Of a DNA stretch of 37,150 bases, positions 9,101-26,329 are shown in pieces. The notes below the pieces were generated by a model. It saw nothing but the letters and a program-made list of their open reading frames with translations. It did not search any database and was not told the origin of the DNA. Made by a program: the position numbers and the translations under genes. This DNA is from Polymyxa betae A26-41 (taxonomy: Eukaryota > Protista > Endomyxa: Phytomyxea). The DNA lies in the NCBI GenBank assembly GCA_003693705.1, contig RBZT01000852.1, positions 1-37,150 of the forward strand, written 5' to 3'. Numbering within the stretch: position 1 is the first letter of the stretch; each line of letters opens with the position of its first letter.

Positions 9101-10351
9101 ATGACAGATCGGGACACCGTTGCAGCTATCGCGGCCCTGTCGGCGTCTATTCAAGCTTCGGTGCAAGCCGTCGTTACTGCTGCTCAGCTCTGCATTGTGG
9201 ATGCAAGCATGGACGGCCGATCCTTTAGAGCACCCAATGCTATTCGATGGACTATTCGGGAGAGTCAGTTTCTGACAGCATCGAACGACCCAGGGTGTTA
9301 CGATGGCTGGTTTCGTAACGTCTTCCGCTGTTCGAAAGCCAGTTTCGATCAGATAGTCGACCTGGTTGAGGGGAATTGGGAAAGGGTTAATCTCCCTCTA
9401 GGCCTTAATACACATTTTGGGATCCCATGGCGCGTTGCTGTGGCCATGTACTACTTTACTCATTCCGGTTCCATTGTAGATTCTGCCAAAGTGTTCGGCA
9501 TGAGTAAATCATCGGCCTGGCGCTATATCGAACAAATAATCGACGTCTTGCTACTCATTGGCAAGAGATTCATTAGGCTTCCAGATAATCAGGCAAAATG
9601 GCAGTCACTCAGCGGTGGGTTTGAGAAATCTTGGGTTTCCTAACACCTGCCTCTCAATTGATGGTGTTCTTTCGAAATCGAGCGTCCCTTCAATTATGAA
9701 GGATGGTATTGTCGGAAAGGATTTCCAGCCATCAATGCATTGGTCGCTGTTGATCATTTGAAACGAATCCGCGATTATGCTCTTCGCCCAGGTTCAGAAA
9801 ATGACAAGGGCGTTTATAACCGGTCCAGTTTTGGTAGCGTTATACATGCCAAGGTGCCAAAATGCAAAATGATAGTAGGCGATGCAGGATATCAGCTATT
9901 TACTCACCTGATGACCCCGTACGAGATTCGGCCAGATATGCCTCGTGACGAGAGAAACTATAATTATCTCCATTCAAACACGAGAATCGTCGTTGAGCAA
10001 GCATTTGAATTTTTGAAGGGACGTTTTAGAATCTTCAAAACGGCTTTGAACATGAAAGGCACAGCGGCAACATTGCCGATGGATCTGGATGCCGAGTTTG
10101 AACGAGACCGCACAGCAACTGAAAGCATGGCCAAGTTGATACGGGCGTGTTTTGTGCTGCACAATATCCTCATCGATCTACATGACAACACCACCATCGA
10201 TATCGAATCGGAGCAGCATGAACGAGAGCCGTCCTATCCAGATACAGCTAATCTCCCATTTGGCTCTGTTGGCGGACAGGCTGCGAAAGCAACTAGGGAC
10301 GCTGTCAAGGCGTACCTCACGACGGTTAAGAAGCACCGGCCGGTTTATTGA
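9101..10351 (+). CDS. Harbinger/HARBI1-like DDE transposase (DDE_Tnp_4), with two compensating frameshifts at ~9627 and ~9670
   Basis: Motifs: FRCSKASF, HTH-like AKVFGMSKSSAWRYI, LGFPNTCLSIDG, RKGFPAINALVAVD, PGSEND, GDAGY, LMTPY, YNYLHSNTRIVVEQAFEFLKGRFRI, ACFVLHN. Confidence 0.92.
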
Positions 10352-10361
10352 GAAACACATT

Positions 10362-11298
10362 TTATGGCTTGGGCGGAGCCAAACGCTCCAGAGCTTGAAG
10401 CATCGCGAGTTGAATATTTGCTCCATTTTCTATTGATTTTCTGATTGCTAATAGATGTTCTTGATCCGCAACTCTATCTTGCTTCACTTCTTTCATTATC
10501 TGTAAAAGGTCACCATCTCCCTGCCTAGACAATGACGAGGCTATTGCCTTCAGGCCCGATCCCACTTCACAAAGGCCAGTTTGAATGCTGAGCCCAATCT
10601 TAGCAAACATTTCGGTCTTGCGTGCAGAGCTGCAACTGGTATTGGGACGGATGTTGCTTTTATAATCTGGCTTCTGGTCTTGTTTGACAACTGGGTCCGT
10701 CGCCTGTCCTAATCGCATCCAAGGCCGGTTTTTTAGCTAGATGCAGCTGGATAATATCAAAGTCGGCCCCTTTCGCATCGGGATCCATAGGTTCGTTTCC
10801 AGTGCGTGTAAACTCTTTACCTGCTGGCTTATGGTCTCGCCATTTGGTAACGCAGTAGTTATGCTTAGCTTTGATCTGGTCAAGCGACAGGTTGACACCA
10901 TGGACGCGATTGACTTCCAGCGCTACTCGATTCCATCCATCGCTTAACGAGTTTCGACTTTTAGTGCCTTCAAAATGATGTTTATATGTCTCATACAGAG
11001 CCTCCATTAAGGTTTCAACCATTTCTCGCGACCATTTCGCAGAATCGCTGGGAGTTCTGTCGGTAGATTCTTTTTTAGGTCGGCCCCTCTTTTTCTGAGA
11101 GGTAGGTGTTGTAGCGGAATCTTGTTTATCAATCGTTTCATTCGATTCATTTATCGAGAGCATCCAATCATCCCTCGCTCCGCTCTCGGGCAATGAAAAC
11201 GGCGCTGGCTGAGTCGGTTTGACTTGAGCGCATTGAGGAGCAACAGAAGTGGGGCTGGAGAAAGATGTTGCCGAGAACGAAGAGTTCGTGGACGACAT
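10362..11298 (-). CDS. Harbinger ORF1, a Myb/SANT-like DNA-binding protein with an AT-hook; frameshift near 10715
   Basis: KKRGRPKK AT-hook, then KWSREMVETLMEAL...WNRVALEVN...LSLDQIKAKHNYCVTKW (Myb/SANT trihelix pattern). The C-terminal helical part is in overlapping ORF 10362-10718. It ends tail-to-tail with the transposase. Confidence 0.82.
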
Positions 11299-14574: not shown

Positions 14575-16614
14575 TTACATGATTGAATCTGCATCGCTAT
14601 CAGAGACCGTGTGAGCGCTCTGGGAAAATTTATCCCTGGCACCATGTTGAAGCCTGTCCAGCCGTGTTCGATTCAGTCGGCTAGTCGAAGTATTTCGAGA
14701 AGCTGTGGACGGATTTACAGCCACCGGCTGGTTCAGAAAGAATTGATAGTTTGATCCTCTTGGATCAGCACCGGACGATTGCGGAATCATAATTATGTCT
14801 TGTAAGCTGCCGTTGTAAGATTCGGGCTCGGCCGCATTGATGACCTCGCGAGAAGAGTTTGGTTCAAAAAAACTGTTATTGGAGCGACTGGCAGCAAGGC
14901 TGTAAGTGGTCGACTGTTGGACGTAATATTTGGGAGCGTTAAAACCCGCCATCCCGTTGTGCTCGGGAGGCCGATCATGACGATCTTTCAAATCTGATAA
15001 GAGCCGCCGAAATACAGTATTTGCAATTATTGCCAGAATCACAACGACGACAGCGACTAACAGCCATATGAGCTCTTTCCGGGTCCAGAGCGAATCCGGT
15101 AACGCCTGTACGGCAGCTGAAGTCGGACACGAATCCGGATAAATCATGTACGAATCCGATCCGCATGTAGTGACGAAAACGGCAACGATGTCAATAGGAA
15201 TGGTAGGATCTGCAGCGAGCGTTAACAGCGGCGATGTGCGAATGACACTTTTCGAATTCTGCATCTGTATGTTAAATGCGGACGCCAGCAACGACCCATC
15301 AGAGTCGGTGTTGTCGCCAAGAATCACGAATGAGATCTCGGTGGAGGTTCGGGTTCGATTCTTGAATTGTACAAGAACGAACCGGGAGGATTGCACATTG
15401 AAAGCCGAACCCAAATCTCTGATGAATGCCGTCTTTAAAGTTTTCTCAACCGAATCAGGAAAGTCCAGTGTCGATCCTGGAACAGTTAGAGATACCTTCC
15501 TGGCGTTGGATATTGGGCTTGTTACAGGACGCGATGAGAGGGAGGGTGAAGCACTTGGCGATAATACAAACAGCGACGAAATTGAGGAAGTCGATTTCCA
15601 TACTGAAGGAGAAGGCGAACTTGATGGCCTTGAACTGTTAGAGATTGGTGCTTTCGTAGACGGCGATGATGATTTAAAAGCTGATTCACAGATCATAGAG
15701 ACAGCGACCCATTTACTCCAACCTGGGCAAGGGTCCACACTAAACTCTTTGTTGGTTTTCGGAATCGAGCACGACCTCTTTCCCAAACATGCGTTATTGA
15801 CAATAGGGAGCGCAGACGATCCGAGATCACATCCAGGAGATGGAGCGAAATTGGGCCACATACCAATAGGGCGACCATAGAGAGCTTGCTGTACAGAAAC
15901 GATGGTCATGTTGTTGGGACAAGAAATGTTCAGATTCGCGCTGGGTCTTTCAAAGGAAAGCCCACCGATCTGCGCCCCGATCGAGTAGAAATACGGAGGC
16001 GGGTAGATCGTGCTATAAAGCTCGAAATCGTCGGAGCTCAGCGCGACCGCGATCGAGCTTAGCCGAATCACATACACCGGAACCGGATTCGTCGACAATG
16101 TCACAACATTCACCGACGTCATTGCCGTACTGGACGTGAACATATCGCCTCGAAGCGAGACTTTCTTCGACGAATAGGTCGGATTGGAGACCATCGTGTT
16201 GACCCTATTGGCGACGTAAAACTGGACGTTCCGATCAGGGCCATTACCAATCGAAATCCCGAACGAAAACCAGGTATCCAAACTGACACTGGGGCCTATT
16301 ACCATCTCATTACCGAACGTTGTACTGATGTTGGTCGCCAGATACCGATCTTGGTAGATATAGACTTTGGGAAGCGATAACGAAGTATCAGAATCGGGAT
16401 GGACGGTGAAGATGATACGGGTTGACAACTCGTTTGAAGGGACCTGGGCCATTCCCATATACGAGACGCTCACACTTGAACGAACTGTCTGCATCCGATA
16501 CCAGGTGTTCGCGACTGTCGAGACAGTTCGATAAGGTTCGTTGAACATCACATTGTAAGGCGGAGCAGCACCGGTTGAGACCGCCGCCAGCAGGCTCAGA
16601 GCCAAAACCAGCAT
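14575..16614 (-). CDS. Type I membrane SUEL/Gal-rhamnose-binding lectin protein, copy A (intact, intronless, 679 aa)
   Basis: Signal peptide MLVLALSLLAAVSTG; ~200-aa beta-rich domain; SUEL pattern ISCPNNMTIVSVQQALYGR...GC...CLGKRSCSIP...FSVDPCPGWSKWVAVSMIC; S/P/T stalk; juxtamembrane domain AFIRDLGSAFNV...RF; TM LIWLLVAVVVVILAIIA; ~140-aa cytoplasmic tail. Confidence 0.9.
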   Translation of the reverse strand: MLVLALSLLAAVSTGAAPPYNVMFNEPYRTVSTVANTWYRMQTVRSSVSVSYMGMAQVPSNELSTRIIFTVHPDSDTSLSLPKVYIYQDRYLATNISTTFGNEMVIGPSVSLDTWFSFGISIGNGPDRNVQFYVANRVNTMVSNPTYSSKKVSLRGDMFTSSTAMTSVNVVTLSTNPVPVYVIRLSSIAVALSSDDFELYSTIYPPPYFYSIGAQIGGLSFERPSANLNISCPNNMTIVSVQQALYGRPIGMWPNFAPSPGCDLGSSALPIVNNACLGKRSCSIPKTNKEFSVDPCPGWSKWVAVSMICESAFKSSSPSTKAPISNSSRPSSSPSPSVWKSTSSISSLFVLSPSASPSLSSRPVTSPISNARKVSLTVPGSTLDFPDSVEKTLKTAFIRDLGSAFNVQSSRFVLVQFKNRTRTSTEISFVILGDNTDSDGSLLASAFNIQMQNSKSVIRTSPLLTLAADPTIPIDIVAVFVTTCGSDSYMIYPDSCPTSAAVQALPDSLWTRKELIWLLVAVVVVILAIIANTVFRRLLSDLKDRHDRPPEHNGMAGFNAPKYYVQQSTTYSLAASRSNNSFFEPNSSREVINAAEPESYNGSLQDIIMIPQSSGADPRGSNYQFFLNQPVAVNPSTASRNTSTSRLNRTRLDRLQHGARDKFSQSAHTVSDSDADSIM

Positions 16615-17029
16615 TTCTGCCGGGAGAGTTCAGAACGGGCACAAAAATCAGAGATATTTCATGAAGACACGCGCCGACATTATCGAAATCTTTTGGTGGT
16701 GCTCCCTTTCAAATAACCTGCTACGTACATGCTTTTTTCGCAAGGAAATGTTGATGTCGATGGGTATTACACGCTGGATGATCCATCGCTATCAGAAAAC
16801 GTGTGGGCGCCTTGGATCGGATTTATCTCTAACGCCGTGCTGGAGTCGGTCCAGCCGAGTCCGGGATCTGAAGCAGCCGATGTATTGTACTTGGCACTTG
16901 ACAGCTTGATGACGATTGGTGGGCTGACATAAAGATAGTGCTAATTAGACCCTGATATGAGAAGATGGGATATGATCAGGATCTGTCTTAATCGAATTGA
17001 GCAGGAAGCCTCTGGGCGCTGCAGAAACC

Positions 17030-18560
17030 CGAATGAATCGTCAATACAGAATCATCAGCGAAATAGATACCAGACAGACGATCATACCGCCAAATATCGA
17101 TTCGTTTCGATCCAAATTGAAAGCGATTTTACGGCTCGAATAGGCATGAATCCGGGTAGACCACTGACGAATTCGTCCAGCAGACTGAGATGAAAAATAC
17201 GACATTCTCGACTAGAACGGGTGGATCGCCAGCAGAATTTAATAGCGTCGCCGTTCGAGCTGCACTCCTCAGCGTTGACATTTGCCTGTATACGGAAAGA
17301 CCCATCGGTGTCGGTGCCATTCGGAAGCACCACGAATGAGATTAGAGGTGACGTTTTTGTCTGAGTCCTTGATAGCTTGACGTTGGGAGTTGCGGCCACG
17401 ACTGATAGGAAGGCCTGGTGCTATCGGTCTCGGGTAGGCCCAATTGTTTGCGAGACTTTCGTGACAAACAAATGAGAGCTTGCGGCCGTCGTTGAGCCGT
17501 CCTGATAGCCATGACTGGCTAGCGAAGAGTCAACCGATAAGAATAGGCGAAACAGAAATCAGTATTCTCGCCACTAATACTGAAGAGAAGTTCTTGGAGC
17601 TAGACAGCTGCAAGGACAAGATGAACGTGTCTACGGCATGAGCAATGAGGGCGAGGCGGAAGGCGAGGATGGCATGGTGGAAGCTGTCTAACCTGAACAG
17701 AGCAACCCAAAAGAGACCCATGAATAAAGATCGAATCCATAGCTGGCGTTGGTCTGAGCAATATGCAGCTGTGTCTGCCGAGACATGATCTGGGAATAAC
17801 TTTCAAGAAGGCGTTATCGGTATCGAGGCGTGATTGGCGGCGGAATTCGGCCAGCGACAAAGTTGACGTTCATAATGATTGGATTTGATTCTGAATTGCA
17901 AGGATAGGAAACACTGCCAGCAGCTGCTCCAGGCGTTCAAATAGGAACGCAACGATCTGATTGTTCTTCTGATAAATGTTGCCAACGGGGAAAGGATATC
18001 GACAGTCGAAGCTGAGGAGAGCAGATGGGGATATTCGTATGGTGTGCAGATAGACAGAAACCGAATTCTTCCAGACTGATACAGCGTCGACAGTGAACAC
18101 CGGCCTGTTAAGGATATCGCCACGAAGAGGGCAGGCAGACATTGAATAAGGTGTTGCGGTCATTGCCGAGACGAAAAGTTCGACGCTACGAGAAGGAAGG
18201 GGTGACGGGACCAAAGAAGATCTCTGCGCCCCAGATTGTCGTGATGTCTGCTGTAAAGATTGGTTACCAGCAATGTAAACGTTGAGAAGAACGGAAGTGC
18301 ATGATTCGCTTGAGCTTAAAAGATGAGTACTGAAGTAGATCTGGTTGTTGGCAATTGAATCCATCCTTGGTAAGAAATAGCAACTGATTGGGATATTCGT
18401 CATAGAGCCAATATGGAGTTGCCGACAATGATTCGGTAAGTATAAGCTCGATGTATGGATACAATGCCGATGTGGGTTGGTGACGAATTGGATGATATAA
18501 CGGCATGAGCTACCACAGAGAGCATTGATCTAGGTGAAGGAGACAAACGCCAGCGCTCCT
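17030..18560 (-). pseudogene. SUEL lectin membrane protein paralog, copy B (decayed)
   Basis: Collinear fragments match copies A/D: PLRGDIL, AFLFER, SCLGRHSC, ISFVVLPNGTDTDGS, LLNSAGDPPV, VVYPDSC. Many frameshifts and stops. Candidate intron 17519-17580. Confidence 0.8.
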
Positions 18561-18599
18561 AGATTATCGGTTTCGGCAATACAATCCATTATGACAGCC

Positions 18600-19460
18600 G
18601 GAATAACATCCTAGACCGTCCATAGCGCCAGCAGACAGCATATACAAAAATCTCCAAAACACAAAGGACAACAGCGACAAGGAATAAGAGCTTTTAGTTC
18701 CATGACGACGAGCTTGTCGATGCTTTTGCGACCCTAGATGCACAAGGATCAGGATCCATTACATACGAATCCTCTTCACAGAGCGTCTCACATAGCTCCA
18801 GAAATCGATTGAGCGTATGCTGCTTTTTGGACTCTGCATCTATAATCGTTTCGCTAACAGAGAGGAATCGGGATCGGGAAACCACAGTCAACGGCTGGGT
18901 CCGGTTTTAAAACTGCAGAAGAATGAATCTGACGGATATGACGCTCAGAGCTGAGCTCCGGTCTCTGATAAAAGCCATCTTCAAAAGGCTCTGAACTGGG
19001 TCAGTGATGTCAATGTCGCTTCAGCCACTGTTAGAAGAATCCTCTGGCTGTTTGACAAAAAATCATGCAGCGCGTCGACCTAAACATATGAAGTCAGCAT
19101 TTGAAATGATTGAAAATGCAAAACGATGCTGTAATGAACAGGCACACCTGCGAGAAAACTCGATAGTATGAACTCACATAAGCGATGGTACAATTGCCCG
19201 CTAGGACCAACGGAGACGAATTCTATTCATTTAAAAACCTGAACAAGTGGAAAGAGCATGACGATCAGGCCTTCATTTCTCACAGGCAGATTTGTTGGCA
19301 ATCTGCAGAATACGAAAACAGCCAAAGACATAGAAGCAAACGCTGATTGTTGACAAGTCTGGCTTCGATCCGCAAGTTCTCGGATCCAGACAGCTGTGTT
19401 CAATGTTGACACGTCTGACTTGAAATACGATCCGAAAGTTCTCGGGTCCAAAGACAGCTG
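18600..19460 (-). pseudogene. Paralog copy C (decayed; juxtamembrane domain and TM recognisable, lectin domain not)
   Basis: Minus-strand translation gives LSNSQRILLTVAEATL, DITDPVQSLLKMAFIRDRSSALSVISVRFILLQF*NRT, LCEEDSYVMDPDPC and SWN*KLLFLVAVVL. These match copy A segments ISNARKVSLTV, LKTAFIRDLGSAFNVQSSRFVLVQFKNRT, TCGSDSYMIYPDSC and WTRKELIWLLVAVVV. Confidence 0.75.
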
Positions 19461-19889
19461 CATTCAATGATGACAGGATTCTAATTCAAAGCCAAATACT
19501 CTTAGAGCATGAAGTGAGGACTGAGGGGGCTTAGTATAGCGCAACCCTTTCTTAGCTCTGATATAATCACACTCACTCATTCGGTTAGACAGAATCGTGA
19601 TTGTATGGCAATGGGGCAGGCTATATAGCCAGCCCACAGAGCAGTTTAAAATCGACTGTTGTCAGATTGGGTTTATTGCAAATTTCTTCACCAATTTGTA
19701 GGTTTGCATAAAGTCGAATTTCAGCACGATCGCGAATCTTGACACTGCAGATCATCGAGGTTTAAACATGGCTAGGTAGCAGATATCTGCAGGAAGCCTT
19801 AAAGACATCATTCACTGGAATGATATTGCCTCGAAAATATCTCGAAGTGCCTTGCCTCAGATCTGAATACTAAAGAAAATGAGAACTGT

Positions 19890-21989
19890 CTACAAAGCAG
19901 ATTTTTGAAGCGATTGCGTATTTCCTCCATTCAGGGATGGGAACACGAAGCCATTCGGATTCAGATTCGGCATTGGACTGTTCAGCGTCTGACCGACGTG
20001 AATCGGATAGTTTGATGTCAGATTTGGCAGCACCTCCTGAACACTATTAATCGGTTGAAAACTTGGAACTGCTGGTGTCGTTTGCTGCAAAGTTCCATTA
20101 GCTCGCGTCGAAGCCCTGCGCTGAAACCGAATCAAAATATACAAGCCAGCGACGACGATCACAGAACACAAAACAATCACGGCTCCATGCGCTTTGCCAA
20201 AACCTGATTCGTTATCTGATAAAAGTACTCCAGAAATAGAGGATGGGCAAGGATTCGGGTATATCACATACGAGCCTGAATCACAAAACGAGATGTGAAT
20301 GGTCTCGACGTTGATAGAAACAGGAGGGTCACTGGCCGACTTCAATAAATCTCCAGCTCGAAGCCTGCTGCTTGAAATCTGCATTTGATCGTAGAAGTCG
20401 TTGACCAGAAGCGATCCTTCGGGATCAGTGGCGTTCGGCAGAATCACAAACGATAACAGCGTCGACGTTGCGGTCTGGTCAAAGAATTGGACCATGATGA
20501 ACCTGGTCTTTGGCACGTTAAGAGCAGCACTCATATCGTTGATGAACCATTCAATCAAAGCCGTTCGAACCGAGTCCCTCATGCCCAAAGTTGACTCGAA
20601 GACGTTTAGAGAGATACGCCATGCGTTCGAATTTGTTCGAGATATAGGCCTAAGAAAAGTTTTAGCAAAGAATGCAAACATAAGGGCTGAACGCCAAAAA
20701 GCTATCTCGGAAAAAGCTTAAAGGCACATACACCAATGAGGGTACGTTGGCAGCTTGAGAAGTATTGCTTATTGCAGGAGAATAAACCTTTGGCGATGGA
20801 ACTTTGAGAGAAGAAGCAGTCTTTGATGATGGTGCCGCGACAGGCGAAGAAACTGTGGATGCTGATTGTAATGGAGCTGAGAGGGACCAAGAAGCTGTTG
20901 ATGGGGACTGGAGAGAAGAAGCAATCTTTGAGGATGGAGCCGCGACAGGCGAAGAAACTGTTGATGCTGATTGTAAGGGAGCTGAGAGGGACCAAGAAGC
21001 AGTTGATGGGGACTGAGAAGAAGGCGTGAAGGTCGCATTACAGAGCATAGCAACAAAACCCATTTTCTATATCCTGCGCAGGGGTTATACTGGAAATCGT
21101 CGTTAGTTCTAGGAACTGTGCATGTGTTCTTGCCGAGGCACGCCTTCTGGACGACAGGAAGGGCGCCGGGTCCCATATCGCAGGCTGAATTCGGCGCGGT
21201 CCTAAATCCCAATCCAGATGGACGATCGTAGTAGGCAGACTGAACAGAAGCGATAACCTGATCTCCAGGGCAGGAGATATTCGGAACGACGCCTGAAATC
21301 TCGAAGGCGAGCGCGCCAATCGTAGATCCGACTTGATAGAACGAAGGCGACGGGAAATTGAATCGAAATAAATCGAAATCGACAAAGTCCATCGATTGCG
21401 GGAATACACGTAATGACGTCATATAAACCGGGACCGGAAATGTCGATAGCAATAGCTGTGGTGCGAGCACGACGGCTGTAGACGATGTCAGAATATCTCC
21501 ACGAAGCGGAACCGTTTTCGCCCAATAGCCCGGGACGATGTTTGTCACCAGATTGGAGACATAAAATTTGACATTGCGACCAGGTCCGTTTGTAATCGAG
21601 ATTCCGAAGGAGAACCAGATATCTTGAGTGATATTTGGTCCAATTAGCATTTCGTTGCCGAACGTTGTCGTGATGTTGGCAGCCAAGAACTTATCTTGAT
21701 AGATAAAGACGTTCGGAAGCGCTTGAGAGGTATCAGCAATGGGACGGACTGAAAAAAGAAGGCGGTTTGCTGATTGGGTAGAAGGAACTTGGGCAAAGCC
21801 CATATACGAGACAGCAACAGATGAGATATTCGTCATGCTGCGATATGTAAAGAAAGTGACCACAGTATCTGATGTGCGATAAGGATCCCCGATTAACCTG
21901 ATATAAGGAGGAAAAGCGGCAGTGGATAAGTTCGGGATCAGCAGGCCCCATAACAACAACAGTATAGAGTAGGTGGTCATCTCCGTCAT
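19890..21989 (-). CDS. SUEL lectin membrane protein, copy D (one intron 20650-20731; one 1-nt frameshift at ~21056)
   Basis: Signal peptide, N-domain and SUEL are closely similar to copy A. A GTATGT...CTAAAAC...TTAG intron splices in frame (SLV|PISR). Adding one T to a T4 run restores KWVFVAMLC. TM is AVIVLCSVIVVAGLYILI. Confidence 0.85.
20806..21015 (-). repeat. 2 x 105-bp (35-aa) tandem duplication in the S/P-rich stalk of copy D
   Basis: PSTASWSLSAPLQSASTVSSPVAAPSSK(I/T)ASSL occurs twice; units start at 20806 and 20911 on the + strand. Confidence 0.95.
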
Positions 21990-25582: not shown

Positions 25583-26224
25583 TCATGAACCCTGTGAACG
25601 GAAGCAAAACAATAATGGGTCAATAACGCAATAATAATGTTCGCCCAGTTCTTCACGAATCTGTTTACGAACGATAACGGCTGCTGCTTTCACCAACTCT
25701 TTTTGTACGTCCGGAGATGTGTACTTGGCATTTCGAGGTGAACTTCTCACAACCTTTTGCAATTCTGGATCATTCTGGATAAGGAAATCTAGTGTTTCGA
25801 GAAAGTTTCCCCAATTCAAGGAGTCAGCACTCTCATCGTGTCCACGAAACGCCAAGACCTGTCTTGCAAGATGCAGTGCTGTTATGGCAACCGCCACTAT
25901 GTGCCTTGACTGAGCATTCTTCTGATTTTGGTCAAGAGTTGAAAGAGCTGTTGGCAGGACTTTAGACTTCCGGAAATTCATCGCCGGTTCTAAATATGTC
26001 TGAGGATGGCTGTTGGAGCTATCACTCGTGGGGGGTTCGCTCGGTGGATCCGCTTGACCGCTGATTGCCACTAGGGGAGGTATTTCGCATAGCTGCAGTG
26101 TGATGGGATCGATACCGACAACTTGGTCGAGCTCCTTCTCGTCCAACAGGTTCGTCATTCTTCGGGCCCACCCTGCGAAGTTTGTGCATTCGAATTTGGG
26201 CACAACCTCATCCCCTTTTCCCAT
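25583..26224 (-). CDS. Chimeric ORF: copia gag N-terminus fused in frame to a hAT transposase (DUF4371/ZMYM1-like) fragment
   Basis: N-terminal VPKFECTNFAGWARRMTNLLDEKELDQVV (copia gag). C-terminal LARQVLAFRGHDES...GNFLETL...SPRNAKYTSPDVQKELV...IREELGEHYYCVID (hAT motifs up to the first catalytic Asp). Confidence 0.8.
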   Translation of the reverse strand: MGKGDEVVPKFECTNFAGWARRMTNLLDEKELDQVVGIDPITLQLCEIPPLVAISGQADPPSEPPTSDSSNSHPQTYLEPAMNFRKSKVLPTALSTLDQNQKNAQSRHIVAVAITALHLARQVLAFRGHDESADSLNWGNFLETLDFLIQNDPELQKVVRSSPRNAKYTSPDVQKELVKAAAVIVRKQIREELGEHYYCVIDPLLFCFRSQGS

Positions 26225-26241
26225 TTCCGTCAACTGAGAGG

Positions 26242-26329
26242 ATGGGACTCTTAATCTGTGACGAGTTCTTATCATGCGTTAATCAAGTGTGTTTGACGCC
26301 TTGTAACGCGCTGGTTACGACTCATCACA
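26242..26329 (-). mobile_element. Copia 5' end: candidate 73-bp LTR (26257-26329) and PBS (26242-26256)
   Basis: Minus strand TGTGATGAGT...ACTCGTCACA (9/10 terminal inverted repeat) is followed directly by GATTAAGAGTCCCATCC, identical to the 6315 site, then the gag ATG. Confidence 0.65.

Follow-up and report, generated by a model that had tools for sequence, protein, structure and literature searches.

Lectin domains of the SUEL or rhamnose-binding lectin (RBL) type (PF02140) are known from SUL-I, CSL3, latrophilin and EVA-1, the last of which is a type I membrane protein with SUEL domains. Classic egg lectins possess eight half-cystines forming four disulfides, and the number of cysteines varies among receptor-borne RBL domains. 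SUEL domains sit on receptors such as latrophilin, and in mouse latrophilin-1 (Lat-1) the contacts with rhamnose are made by Glu42 (which adjoins the first cysteine), Tyr63, Gly117 and Lys120, the substitutions E42D and K120R abolishing binding (PMC2430599). In plasmodiophorids, enrichment of Gal-lectin domains has been reported for Plasmodiophora brassicae and Spongospora subterranea (Schwelm et al. 2015, PMC4471660), and Gal-lectin transcripts of Polymyxa betae were recorded among expressed sequence tags from early infection (review PMC5772912). The basis of zoospore attachment in plasmodiophorids is unknown, as stated for Spongospora (PMC9944879). A draft genome of P. betae comprising 1,001 contigs (27,085,946 bp, 45.1% GC, Illumina MiSeq) has been published without gene models (PMC6328671). 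In this study, we analyzed a 37,150-nt contig of P. betae A26-41 (RBZT01000852.1, assembly GCA_003693705.1; hereafter the window, GC ~45%), focusing on a tandem array of four minus-strand SUEL lectin genes and gene remnants, named A to D, at 14575-21989.

The array is best explained as a partly decayed tandem cluster belonging to a lineage-expanded family of predicted type I membrane glycoproteins, whose members combine an N-terminal beta-rich domain (N-domain), a single SUEL domain, a Ser/Pro-rich stalk, a juxtamembrane (JM) domain, one transmembrane (TM) helix and a cytoplasmic tail. With its lectin tip, glycosylatable stalk, compact pedestal, TM helix and tail with a conserved end, the modelled design is that of a surface adhesin or receptor. 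Judged from the sequences and the models, the most likely job of the family is cell-surface glycan recognition and adhesion, to which we give about an even chance. Each type of module is known, and the combination together with the divergent N and JM domains appears to be undescribed: SUL-I, CSL3, latrophilin and EVA-1 share PF02140 and the YGR and DPCxGxxK motifs with copy A, whereas the Polymyxa family has a single SUEL domain per protein accompanied by a LamG-like domain, a stalk and an SEA-like pedestal, a combination found in none of the four. The published plasmodiophorid Gal-lectin expansion concerns the same domain family and the same group of organisms; the searchable text of the two reports (PMC4471660, PMC5772912) deals with domain enrichment only and gives no description of this architecture, of its N and JM domains, or of clusters and pseudogenes. 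A first-pass annotation had considered the array a candidate for an undescribed system, which holds for the architecture, for which no published description was found, and not for Gal-lectin enrichment in plasmodiophorids, which had already been published.

Copy A is the reference for the family (Table 1). Its signal peptide, its TM helix followed by basic residues and the location of all eight cysteines on the predicted outer side are the features expected of a predicted type I membrane protein, and a TM helix equivalent to that of A was found in all paralogs. The first-pass annotation had listed a signal peptide, a beta-rich domain of ~200 aa, a SUEL lectin, a mucin-like stalk and a TM helix, all of which were recovered in A, and its details of the JM domain and the tail needed correction: the JM domain measures ~134 aa rather than ~120 aa, and its cysteine pair (C484, C496) has the spacing C-x11-C instead of C-x9-C. 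All domain sequences submitted to searches and folding were unaltered single-exon sequences.

The SUEL assignment, already made at first reading, is solid by Pfam score and PDB match. Copies A and D scored 48.5 and 39.1 bits, respectively, against a cut-off of 31.4 (Pfam E 1e-12 for A), and the best solved relative of the domain is sea-urchin SUL-I (5h4s, E 9e-26 over its three repeats), followed by a plant beta-galactosidase lectin domain, CSL3 and latrophilin. Both the YGR and the DPCxGxxK(Y/W)(L/V) motifs are present in A (the latter as DPCPGWSKW), and GRP, DPC and the Lys are conserved in at least 80% of the SUEL domains of 18 paralogs. A retains the residues at the Lat-1 positions Tyr63, Arg65, Gly117 and Lys120, with Tyr, Gly and Lys placed by direct alignment. 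A conserved Glu occurs at E-x9-C-x13-YGR, a spacing comparable to that of Lat-1 Glu42, outside the Pfam and PDB alignments, and departs in three of the 18 aligned paralogs. In contrast to RBL proteins with eight cysteines, the domain of A has six, the first pair being lost and a Phe preceding the conserved Glu; because cysteine number varies in receptor-borne RBL domains, the Pfam assignment stands. From these residues, the SUEL domain looks competent to bind sugar.

The N-domain, for which a ConA/LamG-like fold had been proposed, proved to have such a fold in its model. The AlphaFold2 (AF2) model built on 14 paralogs is all-beta with 12-13 strands (predicted local distance difference test, pLDDT, 87.5; predicted TM-score, pTM, 0.86). 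Foldseek returned 229 PDB matches at E<=1e-3, led by the lectin-like HCN domains of clostridial neurotoxins and NTNHA (E 2e-6) and also including neurexin LNS2, NEL, collagen IX NC4 and PAPP-A LamG. Structural re-alignment (VIA) gave Z values of 13-14.4 over ~160 residues (150-170) at ~3 A to sialidase CBM40 modules, pentraxins, BoNT/NTNHA HCN domains and PAPP-A LamG, the sugar-binding CBM40 modules being the best matches (top Z 14.4). Identity to any solved structure was 8-15%. When the family profile was scored against 1.84 billion representative proteins, only seven proteins were retrieved at E<=1e-3. One was a fragment of A itself, four (P0002, P0003, P0005 and P0006; E 4e-11 to 3e-4), from bacterial and eukaryotic proteins, fell exactly on Laminin_G_3 domains, one was a further weak match (E 3.5e-4) and one was a 51-aa piece of a 906-nt JGI metagenome contig of 69% GC (L024). 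The Pfam model Laminin_G_3 (PF13385) gave no match over its cut-off in A and matched only two of the 14 paralog N-domains (best E 2.3e-5), and a PDB profile search with the N-domain returned only a chance-level row for a botulinum-like toxin (E 0.62). On the model and these profile relatives, the N-domain is predicted to be a ConA/LamG-type jelly roll and a very divergent member of that superfamily: the jelly roll is common to CBM40, HCN, pentraxins, PAPP-A LamG and the N-domain, whereas a Pfam match is absent from A. The fold alone leaves the ligand undefined and is no proof of glycan binding.

Several observations were made alongside the N-domain searches. Contig L024 codes for a longer relative of the N-domain that scores 84 bits against the family hidden Markov model (HMM) and is interrupted by two in-frame stops; outside the P. 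betae genome no other clear relative was found, and the source organism of the contig is much more GC-rich. The nearest non-family relatives of the N-domain (E 4e-11) are the ENA proteins P0002 and P0008, of 388 and 543 aa, respectively, with two tandem Laminin_G_3 domains and a weak similarity to the clostridial neurotoxin receptor-binding N-domain family. Within the N-domain of A, residues ~120-135 (window ~16160-16205) form the sole block of low confidence (pLDDT 65), which is the most indel-rich and variable loop in the paralog alignment and a candidate specificity loop. The residues S34, T81, E86, W98 and R111 (domain numbering) of the N-domain are invariant.

For the JM domain, the AF2 model built on 18 paralogs (pLDDT 90.8) has the order beta-alpha-beta-beta-alpha-beta followed by a short hairpin carrying C484 and C496. 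Foldseek gave weak rows only, with EpCAM and Trop2 in the lead (E 0.03). By exhaustive structural comparison with VIA, Z values were 8.3 for the Trop2 C-domain, 7.8 for CELSR1, 7.8 for the MUC16-type SEA domain 1ivz (101 residues, 3.1 A), 7.5 for SorCS2, 7.2-7.3 for human MUC16 SEA, 6.7 for the SEA region of TMPRSS6, 6.6 for IA-2, 6.5 for CDH23 MAD28 and 6.2 for PCDH15 MAD12; a best Z of 7-8 is, by the warning of the tool, commonly reached and may mark a common arrangement. Because about half of the top 24 structural rows are extracellular membrane-proximal modules, the moderate Z values carry some weight. The domain has the position of the SEA domains in the mucins MUC1 and MUC16, directly following a mucin-like stalk and preceding the TM helix, and the same order of strands and helices, and it resembles other membrane-proximal ferredoxin-like modules (EpCAM/Trop2, CDH23 MAD28, PCDH15 MAD12, IA-2, KIAA0319) at Z 6-8.3. 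Unlike these modules, it adds a C-terminal hairpin with C-x11-C and has neither the G/SVVV motif nor membership by sequence. None of the 18 JM domains matched SEA (PF01390) in Pfam at E<=1, and a PDB profile search with the JM domain gave no match. Membership of the SEA family was rejected, as no sequence-profile match was obtained. ESM Atlas neighbours included KIAA0319 clusters (TM-score 0.53-0.55), and membership of that family was likewise rejected, since A alone matched the KIAA0319 C-terminal domain PF23620, at E 0.024 and 15.5 bits, below the cut-off of 27. The autoproteolysis motif G/SVVV, a mark of the cleaving SEA domains only and sought in the turn between strands 2 and 3, is absent, the consensus there being Q-T-x-x-S-T-L-L-S-F-V with no Gly-Ser, and nothing in the sequence supports a predicted self-cleavage. 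The model describes a ferredoxin-like, SEA/MAD-like sandwich with likeness at the fold level only; of the earlier description as SEA-like, the fold (Z 7-8.3, same topology) stood, and SEA membership in Pfam and the cleavage motif did not.

The tails had been described as low-complexity and unrelated, which is true of A compared with D and not of A compared with the B remnant and at least six paralogs, which share a C-terminal motif. In A this motif reads R-L-x-x-G-A-R-D-K-F-x-Q ... D-S-D, and its family form is a basic stretch followed by G-A-R-(D/V/E)-K-F-x-Q, with D-S-D lying a few residues from the C-terminus. It is common to A, C872_2 to C872_5, C244_1, C244_2, partly C390 and the B remnant, and is absent from D and the three C841 copies. 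That the motif is retained in tails otherwise of low complexity suggests that it makes a contact for sorting or signalling.

Sequence searches are almost blind to the N and JM domains. Word-index protein searches with whole A, A 365-545 and A 18-315 were blank in an index that needs shared 5-mers and from which the P. betae proteome is apparently missing, and the whole-A search was probably swamped by low-complexity stalk words. Metagenome pattern scans with the JM and N alignments and an ESM Atlas search by features gave no match. The near absence of P. betae proteins from protein collections fits a genome published without gene models.

At the genome level, 27,085,814 bases in 1001 contigs were searched with A, giving 49 matching pieces, and domain HMMs run on the fetched clusters resolved these into ~20 loci with the order N, SUEL, JM in six main clusters. 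Four loci lie in the window, four on C841, six and a fragment on C872, three on C244 and one each on C390, C255, C121 and C955, and a lone JM fragment lies on C598. About 11-12 of the ~20 loci look intact, the others having stops, frame changes or truncations, and the N, SUEL and JM domains are all conserved across the intact members. Among 30 SUEL loci over the Pfam cut-off in the genome, ~19, or about two thirds, belong to this lectin-mucin family. The N-domain tree was almost unresolved, with just one divergent pair (C121, C955) and a subclade of seven members set apart; its terminal branches of 0.3-2.5 indicate that the duplicates are old. The closest paralog pairs are 50-58% identical in protein, so that synonymous sites would be saturated for the ratio of nonsynonymous to synonymous substitution (dN/dS). 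A candidate GT..AG intron at the stalk/JM boundary occurs in several paralogs besides D and is missing from A and some others; those of the paralogs were checked by script solely for keeping the frame open, and confirmation by RNA is confined to D. As side observations, C841_3 has an in-frame insert with stops between N-domain and SUEL (L013:7658-7711, G000:C841) that resembles a 54-nt (or 42-nt) GTATGG...TTTAG intron and holds degenerate TTTAGGG-like telomere-type repeats, and in C872_3 and C244_3 the frame also changes between N-domain and SUEL.

In the window, tblastn of A confirmed that the four head-to-tail minus-strand paralogs described earlier are all real. From high to low coordinates their order is D (21989-19890), C (~19020-18634), B (~18429-16822) and A (16614-14575), and of the four, one is an intact gene, one a near-intact gene, one a full-length but dead copy and one a 3' fragment. 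The states first assigned to A (intact), B (decayed) and D (near-intact) were thereby upheld, whereas C is a 3' fragment and not a whole decayed copy. The reading as a birth-and-death array agrees with the genome census, in which about half of the ~20 loci are intact. Transposon genes flank the array, namely a Harbinger-type DDE_Tnp_4 gene at 9740-10351 with a Myb/SANT open reading frame (ORF) at 10660-11298 (window 9101-11298) and, on the other flank, a hAT-like DUF4371 ORF at 25583-26275; a fragment of a protein kinase occupies 1312-1881.

The decayed copies were read with family HMMs made from paralogs and run on three-frame translations, broken copies being searched in pieces with X placed at stops. 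For B, tblastn of A gave several weak pieces between 18504 and 17144. The JM pieces of C recognized by HMM, at 19014-18724, lie in three frames with a stop. As no N-domain or SUEL trace was found with the family HMMs between C and the 3' end of D, C is a 3' fragment; a whole copy was ruled out, only JM pieces having been detected by HMM. What is left of B and C shares only 33-52% identity with the nearest copies. RNA contigs are deepest over A and D, with low and uneven depth over B and C. Copies B and C are both dead, and within the window only A is able to make a full protein.

Copy D was aligned with A by tblastn in two parts, its N-domain and SUEL at 21929-21045 (51% identity over 299 aa, E 4e-91) and its JM domain at 20651-20118 (40% identity, E 2e-30). 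RNA contigs from two studies (X3 and X5) join 20648 to 20731, the skipped stretch having CT..AC ends on the plus strand when the cut is moved by +1; because the ends of the skipped 82 nt are GT..AG on the minus strand, D is spliced and transcribed from the minus strand. A second frameshift considered for D was rejected, as the site is the spliced 82-nt intron. The N-domain and SUEL of D lie in one frame until a T-run at 21055-21058, and the Ser-rich stalk lies in another. No run showed an indel in this T-run, including an independent DNA run with the same organism label (X2) and the RNA contigs (X3, X5). The frame change is therefore real, and an assembly error was rejected, the change being present in both independent DNA and RNA and the assembly being made from Illumina reads. 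X2 lacks 17 nt at 20516, inside the JM domain of D, and this deletion is a second lesion of D in the X2 strain. Apart from this, X2 and the window differ by six single-base differences (17558, 20007, 20215, 21839-21840 and 22051), four of the six inside D. Not counting the final Cys, located past the frame change, the SUEL domain of D departs at four of 18 highly conserved columns (including YGR to YDR and DPC to NPC), and its N and JM domains depart at no highly conserved family column. We read D as a young, still transcribed pseudogene, whose frame as it stands would end after the SUEL domain and ~90 out-of-frame residues and whose product would be at most a truncated secreted protein with N-domain and SUEL.

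Table 1. Features of the lectin array and its four copies in the window
Feature	Position	Strand	Evidence or remark
Copy A, intact intronless gene, 679 aa	14575..16614	-	ORF; stop codon at 14575-14577
A predicted signal peptide, aa 1-17	16564..16614	-	hydrophobic N-terminus, then small residues; equivalent N-termini in paralogs
A N-domain, aa 18-215 (198 aa, all-beta, no Cys)	15970..16563	-	AF2, Foldseek, VIA, profile
A SUEL/RBL domain, aa 216-312, 6 Cys	15679..15969	-	Pfam PF02140
A stalk, aa 313-371 (59 aa)	15502..15678	-	42% Ser, 15% Pro, 5% Thr; 62% Ser/Thr/Pro
A JM domain, aa 372-505 (134 aa)	15100..15501	-	AF2 model
A linker, aa 506-518			between JM and TM
A single TM helix, aa 519-539, then RR	14998..15060	-	mean Kyte-Doolittle 2.93 over 21 aa
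A cytoplasmic tail, aa 540-679 (140 aa)	14578..14997	-	family motif in last ~30 residues
Copy B, full-length decayed pseudogene	16822..18429	-	HMM pieces, three frames, in-frame stops
B N-domain remnants	18429-17966	-	family HMM
B SUEL remnant	17845-17756	-	family HMM
B JM remnant	17369-17144	-	family HMM
B tail-motif remnant	16863-16822	-	tblastn of A, 13/14 residues identical
Copy C, JM and TM remnants only	18634..19020	-	tblastn of A, 33% identity, E 7e-12
D exon 1: signal peptide, N-domain, SUEL, stalk	20732..21989	-	frame change inside
D stalk tandem repeat, 105 nt (35 aa), 2.1 copies	20805..21023	-	TRF, 92% matches
D intron, 82 nt, GTATGT...TTAG, stalk/JM boundary	20650..20731	-	spliced in RNA contigs
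D exon 2: JM, TM, tail without family motif	19890..20649	-	tblastn, HMM

The locus is transcribed, as two studies yielded RNA contigs over A and D. Over A, a 2421-nt RNA contig was placed on 16101-16881 and would end at ~14461 if colinear. As a separate observation, RNA contigs of both studies join 16881 to 16939 and skip 57 nt (window 16882-16938), at depths of 16.9 (X3) and 3.2 (X5) and with a shorter side of 30 nt. This skip has GT..AG ends when read on the plus strand, the strand opposite that of the lectin genes; the site lies in the upstream region of A, adjoins the tail remnant of B and has no long plus-strand ORF across it. It could represent an antisense or upstream transcript with a short intron, or an indel allele.

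As an adhesin or receptor, a family member would present two lectin-type modules at its tip, the divergent Laminin_G_3/ConA-like jelly roll and the SUEL rhamnose/galactose-binding domain, carried on an O-glycosylatable Ser/Pro stalk that may rise from a compact SEA/MAD-like pedestal adjoining the membrane, with a single TM helix and a cytoplasmic tail often terminated by a conserved motif, a basic helix plus an acidic D-S-D. The SUEL module would bind glycans containing rhamnose or galactose, the most plausible target being host root wall or mucilage polymers, and the tail motif may couple the protein to sorting or signalling. Pectic rhamnogalacturonan-I/galactan and arabinogalactan proteins are candidate ligands on the root surface. 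A surface location of the family proteins is inferred from the topology features. Several points weigh against glycan recognition and adhesion as the role of the family. Sugar binding and location are predictions from sequence and models; the aromatic residue of YGR is Trp or Phe in several paralogs, Phe replaces the first canonical RBL Cys in most members, and the Glu is equivalent by spacing only. Many ConA/LamG domains bind proteins and not sugars. The RNA contigs came from infected-root samples and reveal neither the stage nor, for A, whose lack of introns leaves them without strand information, the strand. Finally, no relatives were detected in other plasmodiophorid proteomes, which may reflect database content.

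Another account of the same architecture, unlikely in our estimation though worth weighing, is self-adhesion, in which cells or walls of the parasite are glued together via rhamnose/galactose glycans on its own glycoproteins or spore wall, for example in the cohesion of resting spores into sporosori, the pairing of zoospores or contacts between plasmodia. The architecture speaks for it as much as for recognition of other glycans, the RNA was obtained from infected roots, a material dominated by plasmodia, zoosporangia and sporosori, and a search for N-domain relatives gave none in databases that should include proteins of Plasmodiophora brassicae, a species that forms single spores. However, absence from relatives may be a database gap, and a set of ~20 diverging paralogs is better suited to varied external ligands than to a single self ligand. 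The family might also act without mechanical load, the ectodomain sensing host or environmental sugars and the tail motif relaying the signal, e.g. for encystment or chemotaxis. Conservation of the C-terminal motif in paralogs otherwise ~40% identical is in line with such a signalling receptor, as is the presence of SUEL domains on receptors such as latrophilin (PMC2430599). We nevertheless hold it doubtful, given that Pfam recognizes no signalling domain in the tail, that the motif is absent from D and the three C841 copies and that a mucin stalk with an SEA-like pedestal typically marks surface proteins with an adhesive or protective role. A protein ligand for the LamG-like module, on the pattern of neurexin LNS domains, with SUEL structural or inactive, seems improbable: the Glu, Gly and Lys positions are kept in A and most paralogs, and the top structural matches of the N-domain are sugar-binding CBM40 modules, although its fold matches include the protein-binding neurexin LNS2, NEL, collagen IX NC4 and PAPP-A LamG and many receptor-borne RBL domains have lost their sugar-binding residues (PMC2430599).

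Cell-surface glycan recognition and adhesion would, in a bolder form that we regard as rather doubtful, make the family the zoospore or cyst surface machinery for recognition of and attachment to root cells, the variable loops of the LamG-like domain and the SUEL site reading glycans of the host wall and paralog turnover in transposon-rich clusters tracking host specificity. Plasmodiophorids are obligate root parasites and virus vectors that cannot be grown in culture on their own, and P. betae is the root parasite of sugar beet. If true, the bolder form would open attachment to molecular study for the first time in any plasmodiophorid and would possibly inform what the vector surface offers to the viruses it carries. 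For root attachment or host sensing, the family provides candidates that are defined, expressed and equipped with a predicted sugar-binding site, and its models indicate that an animal-looking mucin design, with lectin tip, stalk and SEA-like pedestal, exists in a rhizarian.

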